From the sequence record PP813861.1: a DNA stretch of 64,000 nt; one strand, given 5' to 3'. The notes below the pieces were generated by a model that was not told the origin of the DNA, made no database searches, and saw only the letters and a program-made list of their open reading frames with translations. Below, in pieces: positions 42,608 through 44,430 of the stretch (position 1 is the first letter of the stretch; every line of letters starts with the position of its first letter). A program made the translations under genes and the position numbers.

Positions 42608-43615
42608 ATGTTTGAATTACTATTATCGCCAGATATAGGCGAAGAGTTACCCTTGGTTGGATTTAATGAAATTATTAAATTAGGCGATCTACCTGTGGCA
42701 CTAGCTGGTACTATGTCATATGTGGATGGGAATATACTGTATGTTGGATCTGGACATCATACTGAAGGACAAACAGCCGCAACTGTGTTCAGACGTTTTA
42801 CCATATCACCATTCGCAGATGCAGGTGCAACTGCTACTGGAACATTCTTACCAGGCGTATCCTTAGGATTTGGAACATTACATAAGAATAATTTCATTGT
42901 TTATGGCGGTATTACTGGATGGAACTCGGCTGGTAATGGTGGTACGGGAACATCTAACTTTATACAACATTTTGATATAGCTACAGGCAATAGGGTTGAG
43001 CGATATAGTGGTCCCGTACCACTTTGGGGTACAGCCTCCGCATCAGATGGTAATGATCTTATTCTATGCGTTAACCCAATTGGCGTAAACGCAATGCGAT
43101 TAAAACCATCAAGTAAGTCTTGGCTTAGCGGGCAAGACTATTCAGGTGGTGCTCGTTCAGGTCAACAGTTATTCTTTTATAATGGTTACTTTTACCATTT
43201 TGGTGGTTGGGATAATACAAAGAACATACCTAATCTTGAAGTTTATCGATATAATGCAACTACCTTAATATGGGAGCAAACACCTTGGATGGTTATACCT
43301 GCTGATAAAGGAACAATCTGGCAAGGTAATGGTTATGTAGATGGGGACTATTTTAATTACCTTAACGCTGTTGATGTCGGCGGTGTAACTAAAATGTTTG
43401 CACAACGTTTTAATATTAGGCGCCGGAAATGGGCTGAACCATTTGAACTAGGTATCGGATTCCTTAATATTTCATCTATAGCTAAAGGTCCGGATAATAG
43501 CATGATCATTGTAGGTGGATCTAAAATGCCAGTTGGTGGTAGAGCATATATGTTGAAAAGCCAATTATTAACTGGTATATATCAAGTTAAAGTAGCCCCA
43601 TTAGTTCTCGATTAA
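42608..43615 (+). CDS. Kelch-like beta-propeller protein, probably virion-associated
   Basis: Repeats LYVGSG, FIVYGG, FYHFGG, IIVGG with Y/W spacing. Confidence 0.75.
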   Translation: MFELLLSPDIGEELPLVGFNEIIKLGDLPVALAGTMSYVDGNILYVGSGHHTEGQTAATVFRRFTISPFADAGATATGTFLPGVSLGFGTLHKNNFIVYGGITGWNSAGNGGTGTSNFIQHFDIATGNRVERYSGPVPLWGTASASDGNDLILCVNPIGVNAMRLKPSSKSWLSGQDYSGGARSGQQLFFYNGYFYHFGGWDNTKNIPNLEVYRYNATTLIWEQTPWMVIPADKGTIWQGNGYVDGDYFNYLNAVDVGGVTKMFAQRFNIRRRKWAEPFELGIGFLNISSIAKGPDNSMIIVGGSKMPVGGRAYMLKSQLLTGIYQVKVAPLVLD

Positions 43616-43649
43616 ACTAAAGATAAAAATACTAGTGCGATGATATTAT

Positions 43650-43760
43650 GTAGGATTACTGTATCTAGATAATCCTAAAGCTATCCACTAAATACACTCG
43701 GTGGTAGATTTAATTATAGAGTGTGTCTGAGTGCCAGGGGTTTGCCACCCCTGGCTATAT
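43650..43760 (+). ncRNA. Candidate small RNA: 5' hairpin + H-type pseudoknot + terminator
   Basis: TATGTAGGA motif; stems 43651-58/43670-77, 43681-89/43700-07, 43693-99/43719-25; terminator 43733-55. Confidence 0.5.
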
Positions 43761-43905
43761 TATGTCAATGAGTGTATCTCGTTCTTTATAACCACTATTG
43801 ATATTTAATATAGGTGAAGGGAAGGTGACGAGGCCTTTCCATAGCCGGTATATAACCTAATTTAATAAAGGTTATATACCACATTGTAATAAAGGAACTT
43901 CTATA

Positions 43906-44430
43906 ATGAATAACACAAATCAGTTTGTAAAAACTATTGTTGATTACCAGGCTATCCTGGATGCATTGATATATAAAACTAATGAGAATTGGAATAAGTA
44001 TGGGATGCATTATCATCTTAATGATGTCAGTCATATCACTATACGTGATCATAGAACAGTAGGGTTTTTTATTGGTCGTCAATCTGGTAGTACTACAGCA
44101 TTAATGGAATTTTCAAAACGCTACCCTGGTGAATGTTTGGCAGTATTCACCGACGAAAGAATTCGACGTGGTGCTCAAGATAAACTATCCAAAACACCAG
44201 ATAACATTATTCCATATTTAACTACATTTAAACTACGTAGCTATATCCATAAATCTGGACTATCAACGATCCAGAAAGACTTTAATGAAAATTTACTTTC
44301 AGATATCCGCTATATACTTGTAGATAATGCATCTTATAATCTAAATTTACGAGGTATTACTGATAAAGAATTTAATCAGTGGGTAGCTGATACTTTTGGC
44401 ACTAGTGTGATTGTAGTTCGTTTTAGTTAA
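43906..44430 (+). CDS. Degenerate P-loop protein resembling a terminase ATPase domain
   Basis: GRQSGSTT (Walker A with K to S) and YILVDN (Walker B-like). Confidence 0.55.
   Translation: MNNTNQFVKTIVDYQAILDALIYKTNENWNKYGMHYHLNDVSHITIRDHRTVGFFIGRQSGSTTALMEFSKRYPGECLAVFTDERIRRGAQDKLSKTPDNIIPYLTTFKLRSYIHKSGLSTIQKDFNENLLSDIRYILVDNASYNLNLRGITDKEFNQWVADTFGTSVIVVRFS

Follow-up and report, generated by a model that had tools for sequence, protein, structure and literature searches.

An ortholog of the phiKZ gp298-gp297 small RNA in a Pseudomonas jumbo phage has a conserved core that may fold as an H-type pseudoknot

The spacer between the gp298 and gp297 homologs of a phiKZ-like phage encodes a predicted 112-nt RNA, which we read as the ortholog of the phiKZ gp298-gp297 sRNA. 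The released product is probably functional, with a core that would serve as the recognition surface for a partner; we put the probability of this reading at about 0.6. The RNA, its ends and its abundance have already been published for phiKZ and are not a new discovery. What is new here is only the plausible hypothesis that the core forms a pseudoknot, together with a possible contact between the loop of the 5' hairpin (HP1) and the L3 loop of that pseudoknot. The DNA analyzed, called the window throughout, is a stretch of 64,000 nucleotides from sequence record PP813861.1 (one strand, 5' to 3'), and all positions are those of the whole window unless another genome or contig is named.

Results

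The window RNA and its published phiKZ counterpart

Judged by blastn, the window is that of a phiKZ-like Pseudomonas jumbo phage: positions 43400-44100 are 100% identical to Pseudomonas phage vB_PaeM_FBPa36, 99% identical to KTN4 and 75.7% identical to phiKZ. The RNA site is a 290-nt spacer between the homolog of PHIKZ298 (42608-43615) and the homolog of PHIKZ297 (43906-44430), both on the + strand. This spacer sits within a phage tRNA cluster, and six adjacent tRNAs were found using ARAGORN and Rfam. The features of the locus are listed below.

42608..43615, + strand: gp298 homolog, a Kelch-like virion/tail protein (phrog_19623, E 2e-216; weak Kelch/NanM Pfam matches)
43625..43633, + strand: AAAAATACT, ~21 nt 5' of the start, a putative counterpart of the phiKZ middle-promoter element AAanTTACc
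43647..43650, + strand: TATG start motif of the phiKZ non-virion RNA polymerase (nvRNAP), a consensus match in an invariant context, with G43650 as the predicted +1
43650..43761, + strand: small RNA of 112 nt, ortholog of the phiKZ '3'UTR_PHIKZ298' ncRNA by CM and by the published mapping in phiKZ
43733..43761, + strand: intrinsic terminator with a 9-bp stem (43733-41/43747-55) and a U-rich tail, -18.6 kcal/mol; 3' end of the RNA
43762..43905, + strand: structured spacer and gp297 5' UTR, with hairpins at 43813-46, 43847-58/43869-80 and 43882-88/43902-08
43906..44430, + strand: gp297 homolog of 174 aa (phrog_2586; 62.6% aa identity to PHIKZ297)

In phiKZ, Grad-seq detected an abundant RNA of ~100 nt from the PHIKZ298-PHIKZ297 spacer, which was confirmed by northern analysis (Gerovac et al. 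2021 mBio, PMC8545117). The RNA sediments in gradient fractions 3-4, whereas tRNAs remain at the top of the gradient, and it does not co-sediment with ribosomes (PMC8545117). In the same study its Mfold fold consisted of two stem-loops and it was taken for a product of 3' UTR processing. Putzeys et al. (2024 microLife, PMC10914365) re-annotated the RNA as 270595-270485(-) with an associated transcription start and proposed a second origin, the PHIKZ297 5' UTR via premature termination. The literature searched contained no paper giving the phiKZ RNA a function.

The window RNA is flanked by the gp298 and gp297 homologs and shares their strand, is homologous to phiKZ 270595-270485(-), and has a TATG at its 5' end and an intrinsic terminator at its 3' end. 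Identity to phiKZ over 43621-43761 is 83.7-85.9% (blastn) and ~84% over the RNA, with synteny kept. By alignment the phiKZ ends 270595 and 270485 fall at window positions 43651 and 43761, which is nearly the interval 43647-43760 given by a sequence-only reading of this DNA made before our analysis. Scores from a covariance model (CM) derived from the homologs were 139.7 bits for the window and 138.2 bits for phiKZ 270485-270596, both sequences being part of the training set and matching by construction. The two RNAs share locus, strand, TATG start, terminator and length (111-112 nt). They differ by 18-19 substitutions, HP1 having been rebuilt by compensation and the L3 sequence being different. 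The published two-stem-loop fold of the phiKZ RNA contains no pseudoknot, and expression of the window RNA is deduced from its sequence. The sequence-only reading had called the RNA a non-coding sRNA, a call that the + strand start and terminator and the northern-confirmed phiKZ homolog bear out. Its view that no named family applied holds for Rfam but not for the literature, where the RNA appears as '3'UTR_PHIKZ298'.

Start site, 3' end and transcription data

The consensus start of the phiKZ nvRNAP is TATG, with G as +1 (PMC4666361). In the window CGATGATATTATGTA around this motif is invariant in 7 lineages. The middle-promoter element AAanTTACc has been described with a position near -24 (PMC4666361), and the ATACT of the upstream window element is invariant across all homologs. 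The window promoter may be of the middle or the late class.

At the other end of the RNA the terminator stem has nine pairs, seven of which are G-C, and is followed by the tail UAUAUUAU. The strong terminator of the sequence-only reading was confirmed both by the stability of this stem and by the phiKZ 3' end 270485, which maps to 43761. A second TATG is found at 43760-43763, directly 3' of the terminator tail. It is present in the window/KTN4 lineage only and is absent from T2P, from phiKZ and from the contig L019 described below.

Four public phiKZ-infection RNA runs were compared, as contigs, with 43400-44100. All four cover the RNA with phiKZ-type letters and not those of the window lineage. 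The first base of a phiKZ-type ONT (nanopore) contig of 90 nt is the G of TATG, and a phiKZ-type Illumina contig begins 2 nt 5' of that G and crosses the terminator into gp297; note that contigs cannot prove ends. In these phiKZ-type runs contigs carrying gp298 extend into HP1 and the core.

Helices of the RNA and its possible pseudoknot

The helices and loops within the RNA are as follows.

43651..43677, + strand: HP1, the 5' hairpin of 8 bp with an 11-nt loop (43651-58/43670-77, eight perfect pairs)
43681..43707, + strand: S1, 43681-89 with 43700-07, eight pairs with U43684 bulged and a U-G last pair
43692..43726, + strand: S2, which crosses S1; 43693-99/43719-25, seven pairs, or eight with A43692-U43726
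43708..43718, + strand: L3, 11 nt of A and U only, with an invariant 3' half UUAUA that can pair with the invariant CUNUA in the HP1 loop

All of the pairings that the sequence-only reading had assigned to these helices and loops were present, as seen both by reading the sequence and by script. L1 is AAA (or AA) and L2 is zero. The S1 loop is 10 nt long and contains the 5' arm of S2; as a simple hairpin S1 has an energy of -6.6 kcal/mol. The two helices cross and have compatible loop lengths, which are sterically feasible by general pseudoknot geometry. The earlier statement that this DNA holds no ORF was also upheld, in that none of at least 20 aa was found on the + strand inside 43650-43722.

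Folding of a 131-nt stretch compared with shuffles gave z = -4.3. For the crossing helices we used a small program that enumerates compact H-type pseudoknots and takes the summed stacking energy of S1 and S2 as the score. Of 1000 dinucleotide shuffles of 43678-43732, two reached the value of -24.9 kcal/mol, as did three of the 582 natural 55-nt tiles of the window. This is uncommon, but about a dozen such pairings should be expected in 64 kb on two strands and the pairing alone should not convince; it has weight because it is located within a mapped RNA.

In the nested consensus fold given by RNAalifold, HP1 is followed by an S2 hairpin, whose inner stem is weak and rich in G-U pairs, and then by the terminator. 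The pseudoknot and this nested three-hairpin fold are, as a rough estimate, effectively level in energy. In the window HP1 plus the pseudoknot came to -22.1 versus a nested MFE of -20.5, and in phiKZ to -21.6 versus -23.8, where the pseudoknot energy is stacking plus a flat penalty of 9 kcal/mol and is approximate only. Co-transcriptional folding would favor the pseudoknot, as S1 can close while the 3' arm of S2 is still to be transcribed. On this kinetic argument S2 could form without opening S1, whereas the nested alternative would require the 3' arm of S1. The H-type pseudoknot proposed by the sequence-only reading can form on paper and is energetically plausible, but S1 lacks covariation (see below) and the nested fold is about equally stable. 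We regard an H-type pseudoknot of S1 and S2 in the core as a tentative assignment, with somewhat less than an even chance of being correct.

Covariation among the homologs

Nine distinct versions of the RNA were compared: those of the window, KTN4, T2P, PA7-Y12, SL2 and phiKZ (GenBank) plus L018, L019 and L020, three contigs reached via gp297 protein clusters. Pairs were counted in an ungapped alignment of 112 columns.

Two pairs of HP1 changed on both sides, one from G-C to A-U (with a G-U intermediate in T2P) and the other from U-A to G-U. HP1 retains its pairing at 64% identity to phiKZ and is broken in L019 (3/8 pairs). S1 is invariant in eight of the nine homologs, with 8/8 pairs and zero covariation, and has four of its eight pairs broken in L019. 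In S2, which also belongs to the RNAalifold nested consensus, three pairs have one-sided C/U changes opposite G and one pair changed from C-G to U-A; 2/8 pairs are broken in L019. The terminator has a G-C to G-U change in phiKZ and L018 and one counted change on both sides. The L019 terminator is shifted by one base, which makes several of its pairs count as broken in the ungapped alignment; when paired by eye in its own register it keeps a complete stem, two pairs of which have changed in both partners. Wherever S2 or the terminator varies on one side only, the change is C/U opposite G, which is compatible only with a + strand RNA. The sequence-only reading had named covariation in related phages as a check. 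HP1 and the terminator are backed by compensatory changes and S2 weakly so, by wobble-compatible changes plus one double change, but S1 gave none.

L019 is the sole divergent homolog (53.6 bits), and its gp297 is 78% identical to that of the window. The L019 RNA is predicted to fold into one long hairpin of -38 kcal/mol (z -5.45). As L019 breaks HP1, S1 and part of S2, the fold would seem to be either non-essential or replaceable.

The HP1 loop (43659-43670) and L3 (43708-43719) match at 10 of 12 pairs in the window and at nine contiguous pairs in phiKZ. The equivalent segments of L019 (1253-1264 and 1302-1313) form 12 of 12 pairs plus six more, and this is the dominant fold there. The complementarity is present in all the other homologs too, though weaker than in L019, and 84% of cells pair versus 21-53% in slid controls. 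No covariation of the HP1 loop with L3 above that of shuffles was detected in the nine-homolog alignment, and except in L019 the helix is 8-15 kcal/mol worse than the folds that contain HP1. The match may reflect a kissing contact or an alternative conformer, or may be a coincidence between A/U-rich segments. A more elaborate proposal, which we consider rather unlikely, is that the 75-nt 5' domain is a tertiary module, a specific aptamer built of a coaxial S1/S2 pseudoknot with L3 touching the HP1 loop (CUNUA with UAUAG). If true, the aptamer module might serve the phage, for example, as a decoy of a host defence or RNA-binding protein, or it might be a sensor controlling gp297 read-through, and L019 would have exchanged the tertiary module for an extended hairpin.

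A conserved core linked to gp297

Identity to phiKZ varies along the locus as listed.

HP1: 64%, pairing kept
Core, 43678-43732 (55 nt): 87%
Terminator: 90%
Spacer, 43762-43905: 53.5%
gp297 homolog: 69%

By these values the core and terminator are an island of conservation within a block that otherwise diverges fast. The S1 and S2 arms comprise 30 nucleotides, among which there is one change relative to phiKZ. The core is therefore constrained in sequence beyond pairing, a pattern that favors a specific partner or a tertiary fold. The diverged block that contains the sRNA begins near 43530, identity to phiKZ being 94-100% through gp298. At ~43530, the 3' end of the gp298 homolog, identity falls from 100% to 50-70%, a drop that resembles a mosaic or recombination boundary.

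Searched with the CM, the phiKZ genome yielded no paralog, and the genomes of PhiPA3, Psa21, 201phi2-1 and Phabio yielded no homolog. Pattern scans for further homologs returned only PA7 from IMG/VR and none from JGI metagenomes or GTDB genomes. On these searches the RNA is single-copy and confined to Phikzvirus. A 22-bit CM match in phiKZ was generic and was discounted.

Three related phages have neither the RNA nor an intact gp297. In PA1C (L007, 2540-2720) a single deletion that starts immediately 3' of HP1 and ends near codon 131 of gp297 leaves a 43-codon gp297 remnant. phiHQ (L009) and BRkr (L010), in both cases at 2508-2650, proceed directly into tRNA-Asn without the RNA and gp297. As both are absent from PA1C, phiHQ and BRkr, the RNA would be dispensable for this phage type. 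In PhiPA3 the gp297 homolog (gene 367) is found at another genome position, away from the gp298 homolog (L012, 495-794). Its leader carries the decamer UAUCCACUAA at L012 677-686, together with a homologous TATG promoter (GCGATGATATGTAG), a hairpin at the 5' end and UTR hairpins that are likewise homologous, whereas its middle, ~190 nt, differs from the window RNA. The joint absence from PA1C, phiHQ and BRkr together with the PhiPA3 leader argues that the RNA is part of the gp297 transcription unit. PhiPA3 gene 368, annotated as a minus-strand CDS overlapping the gp297 leader, may be spurious.

Neighboring genes, spacer and small ORFs

The gp298 homolog has 96.7% aa identity to PHIKZ298, a gene product reported in a Tn-seq paper to be required for adsorption to some wild strains. 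The gp297 homolog is 63% identical to phiKZ gp297, yet the flanking gp298 is at 97%. Pfam, NCBIfam and PADLOC gave no match to the gp297 homolog, and neither a PDB sequence search nor the ESM Atlas was informative. An AlphaFold (AF2) model made from six gp297 sequences had a pLDDT of 61, and Foldseek returned weak RecA/helicase-like matches (E ~2e-3). The protein has a Walker-A-like GRQSGST lacking the lysine and an hhhhD motif (ILVDN). The P-loop gene that the sequence-only reading placed here is in keeping with a weak RecA/helicase-like fold, but neither the lysine-less Walker-A-like loop nor the missing Pfam match supports it.

The spacer is itself structured: folding of 43762-43910 gave an MFE of -41.9 (z -4.3), and the 43882-88/43902-08 stem covers the start codon of the gp297 homolog. 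The spacer hairpins occur in the same places with different sequences in phiKZ, T2P, L019 and PhiPA3.

A 'hypothetical protein' running from the S2 3' arm across the terminator is annotated in PhiPizzaParty (L006, 701-811), ANB1, 6B and KEN49. This CDS has 16 codons in the window and is probably no gene. The small ORFs of the region (GTG ORFs of 22-25 aa and the CDS annotated in some records) were rejected, as they cross the terminator and their length is not conserved.

Comparison with known RNA classes

Searches of Rfam 15, at the gathering threshold and at E<=10, found nothing at the RNA and returned only tRNAs and an unrelated weak downstream match. The cmscan check suggested by the sequence-only reading thus named no family. 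Its riboswitch, ribozyme and nuclease-resistant element gained no support from the same search at E<=10, and no antiterminator was found against the 5' arm of the terminator. Three other classes were rejected. ARAGORN and Rfam gave no tRNA or tRNA-like RNA at 43650-43761. A ToxIN-like type III system would have tandem repeats, of which there are none, and gp297 has no ToxN/CptN/AbiF-type match (Pfam, PADLOC, NCBIfam) and a RecA/P-loop-like fold. As for a recoding pseudoknot, the structure begins 66 nt past the gp298 stop codon (43613-15), and the start of the RNA is also 3' of that stop.

The layout of the locus is that of the jumbo-phage 5'UTR short RNAs (17 in phiKZ and 8 in 201phi2-1), in which a phage-polymerase promoter is followed by a structured RNA, a terminator and a gene reached by partial read-through; these RNAs are a class by origin and not a homologous family. 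The putative pseudoknot has the topology of classical H-type pseudoknots such as frameshift stimulators, preQ1-II, SAM-II and ToxI (S1-L1-S2-S1'-L3-S2', with L2 = 0), including a short L1 facing S2 and a long A/U-rich L3 facing S1. Unlike those RNAs, the window RNA is outside an ORF, has no sequence or CM match and no repeats, and its S1 is without covariation.

Discussion

For the start, termination and read-through of the RNA we rely on the phiKZ data, which are extended to the window through the sequence identity of the signals. The nvRNAP would initiate at TATG with G43650 as +1 and transcribe the 5' hairpin and then the conserved 55-nt core, which would fold as an H-type pseudoknot or as the nested S2 hairpin. 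Most polymerases would stop at the terminator near 43761 to give an abundant and stable 112-nt RNA with a hairpin at each end. Termination would be leaky, with some polymerases continuing, such that one promoter also feeds the gp297 homolog. Given read-through into gp297, the RNA would be both a leader and a released product. The released RNA would be the functional product and its sequence-constrained core the recognition surface for a partner. A protein is a more likely partner than an mRNA, since in gradients the phiKZ RNA runs further down than free tRNA, behavior that we infer to favor a small ribonucleoprotein.

The simplest alternative is that the RNA acts only in cis, as a leader or by-product: a promoter-proximal terminator would throttle gp297, there would be no action in trans, and the short RNA would accumulate because it is well folded. 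Premature termination is known to give 17 5'UTR-derived short RNAs in phiKZ, and the ortholog of the window RNA was itself read as partly derived from the PHIKZ297 5'UTR (PMC10914365). The read-through contigs, the constant linkage of the RNA to gp297 and the non-essential nature of the region also fit a purely cis role. However, such a role does not account for a core at 87% identity next to a spacer at 53.5% and gp297 at 69%, the single change in 30 arm nucleotides exceeds the constraint expected of a terminator leader, and the phiKZ RNA is in fractions 3-4 rather than with free tRNA. We consider this alternative unlikely but not negligible. The origin first proposed by Gerovac 2021, in which the RNA is solely a fragment processed from the gp298 mRNA 3' UTR and has no promoter of its own, agrees with the early dRNA-seq, which found no TSS there (PMC8545117), and with the gp298-carrying contigs that continue into HP1 and the core. 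It became very unlikely when ONT-cappable-seq later gave an associated TSS (PMC10914365); moreover, the invariant TATG is exactly at the 5' end, and PhiPA3 retains the promoter before a gp297 homolog that is away from the gp298 homolog.

Two further proposals would have the core act through pairing. If the RNA were a base-pairing sRNA, the invariant CUAUCCACUAAA (43681-92), which is single-stranded in the nested fold, would be the seed against a host or phage mRNA. RNAalifold leaves 43681-92 unpaired, CCACUAAA is invariant in 9/9 homologs, L019 included, and UAUCCACUAA recurs in the PhiPA3 leader (L012, 677-686). We nonetheless find this distinctly unlikely, given that seed complements are not enriched within the 64-kb window (8 versus 8.5 expected) and that the 3' tail is a poor Hfq-type U-tract. 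In a riboswitch-like attenuator the pseudoknot would permit the terminator to form, and in its unfolded state the S1 3' arm (43700-08) would pair with 43741-49 to allow gp297 read-through. The order of aptamer-like core, terminator and gene is suggestive, as is the 9-pair complementarity of 43700-08 with 43741-49 (terminator loop plus 3' arm), which tolerates the L018 change. This scheme is nevertheless highly improbable: Rfam gives no family at E<=10, the terminator 5' arm (43733-40), which is the usual antiterminator target, has no complement upstream, the local terminator hairpin (-18.6 kcal/mol) should win kinetically, and the alternative pairing is without covariation. Barely credible are a self-cleaving ribozyme, a nuclease-resistant element, a frameshift/readthrough stimulator or a type III antitoxin-like RNA for gp297, for which the one argument is the overall appearance of a compact pseudoknot with a terminator and a ~170-aa gene behind it. 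A ribozyme has no family match in Rfam, recoding conflicts with an RNA that starts 35 nt past the gp298 stop codon and with the lack of an in-frame slippery site, and an antitoxin conflicts with the lack of tandem repeats and of any toxin or defence family match for gp297.

The preferred reading thus remains that of a released, probably functional RNA whose conserved core recognizes a partner. The pseudoknot hypothesis for that core is plausible and testable, although it is not backed by covariation. In jumbo phages of the phiKZ group transcription takes place inside a protein 'nucleus', and mapping in these phages has revealed several small RNAs. For one of these RNAs, the conserved core island, the compensating 5' hairpin and the linkage to gp297 provide concrete mutants and a structural hypothesis for later study.
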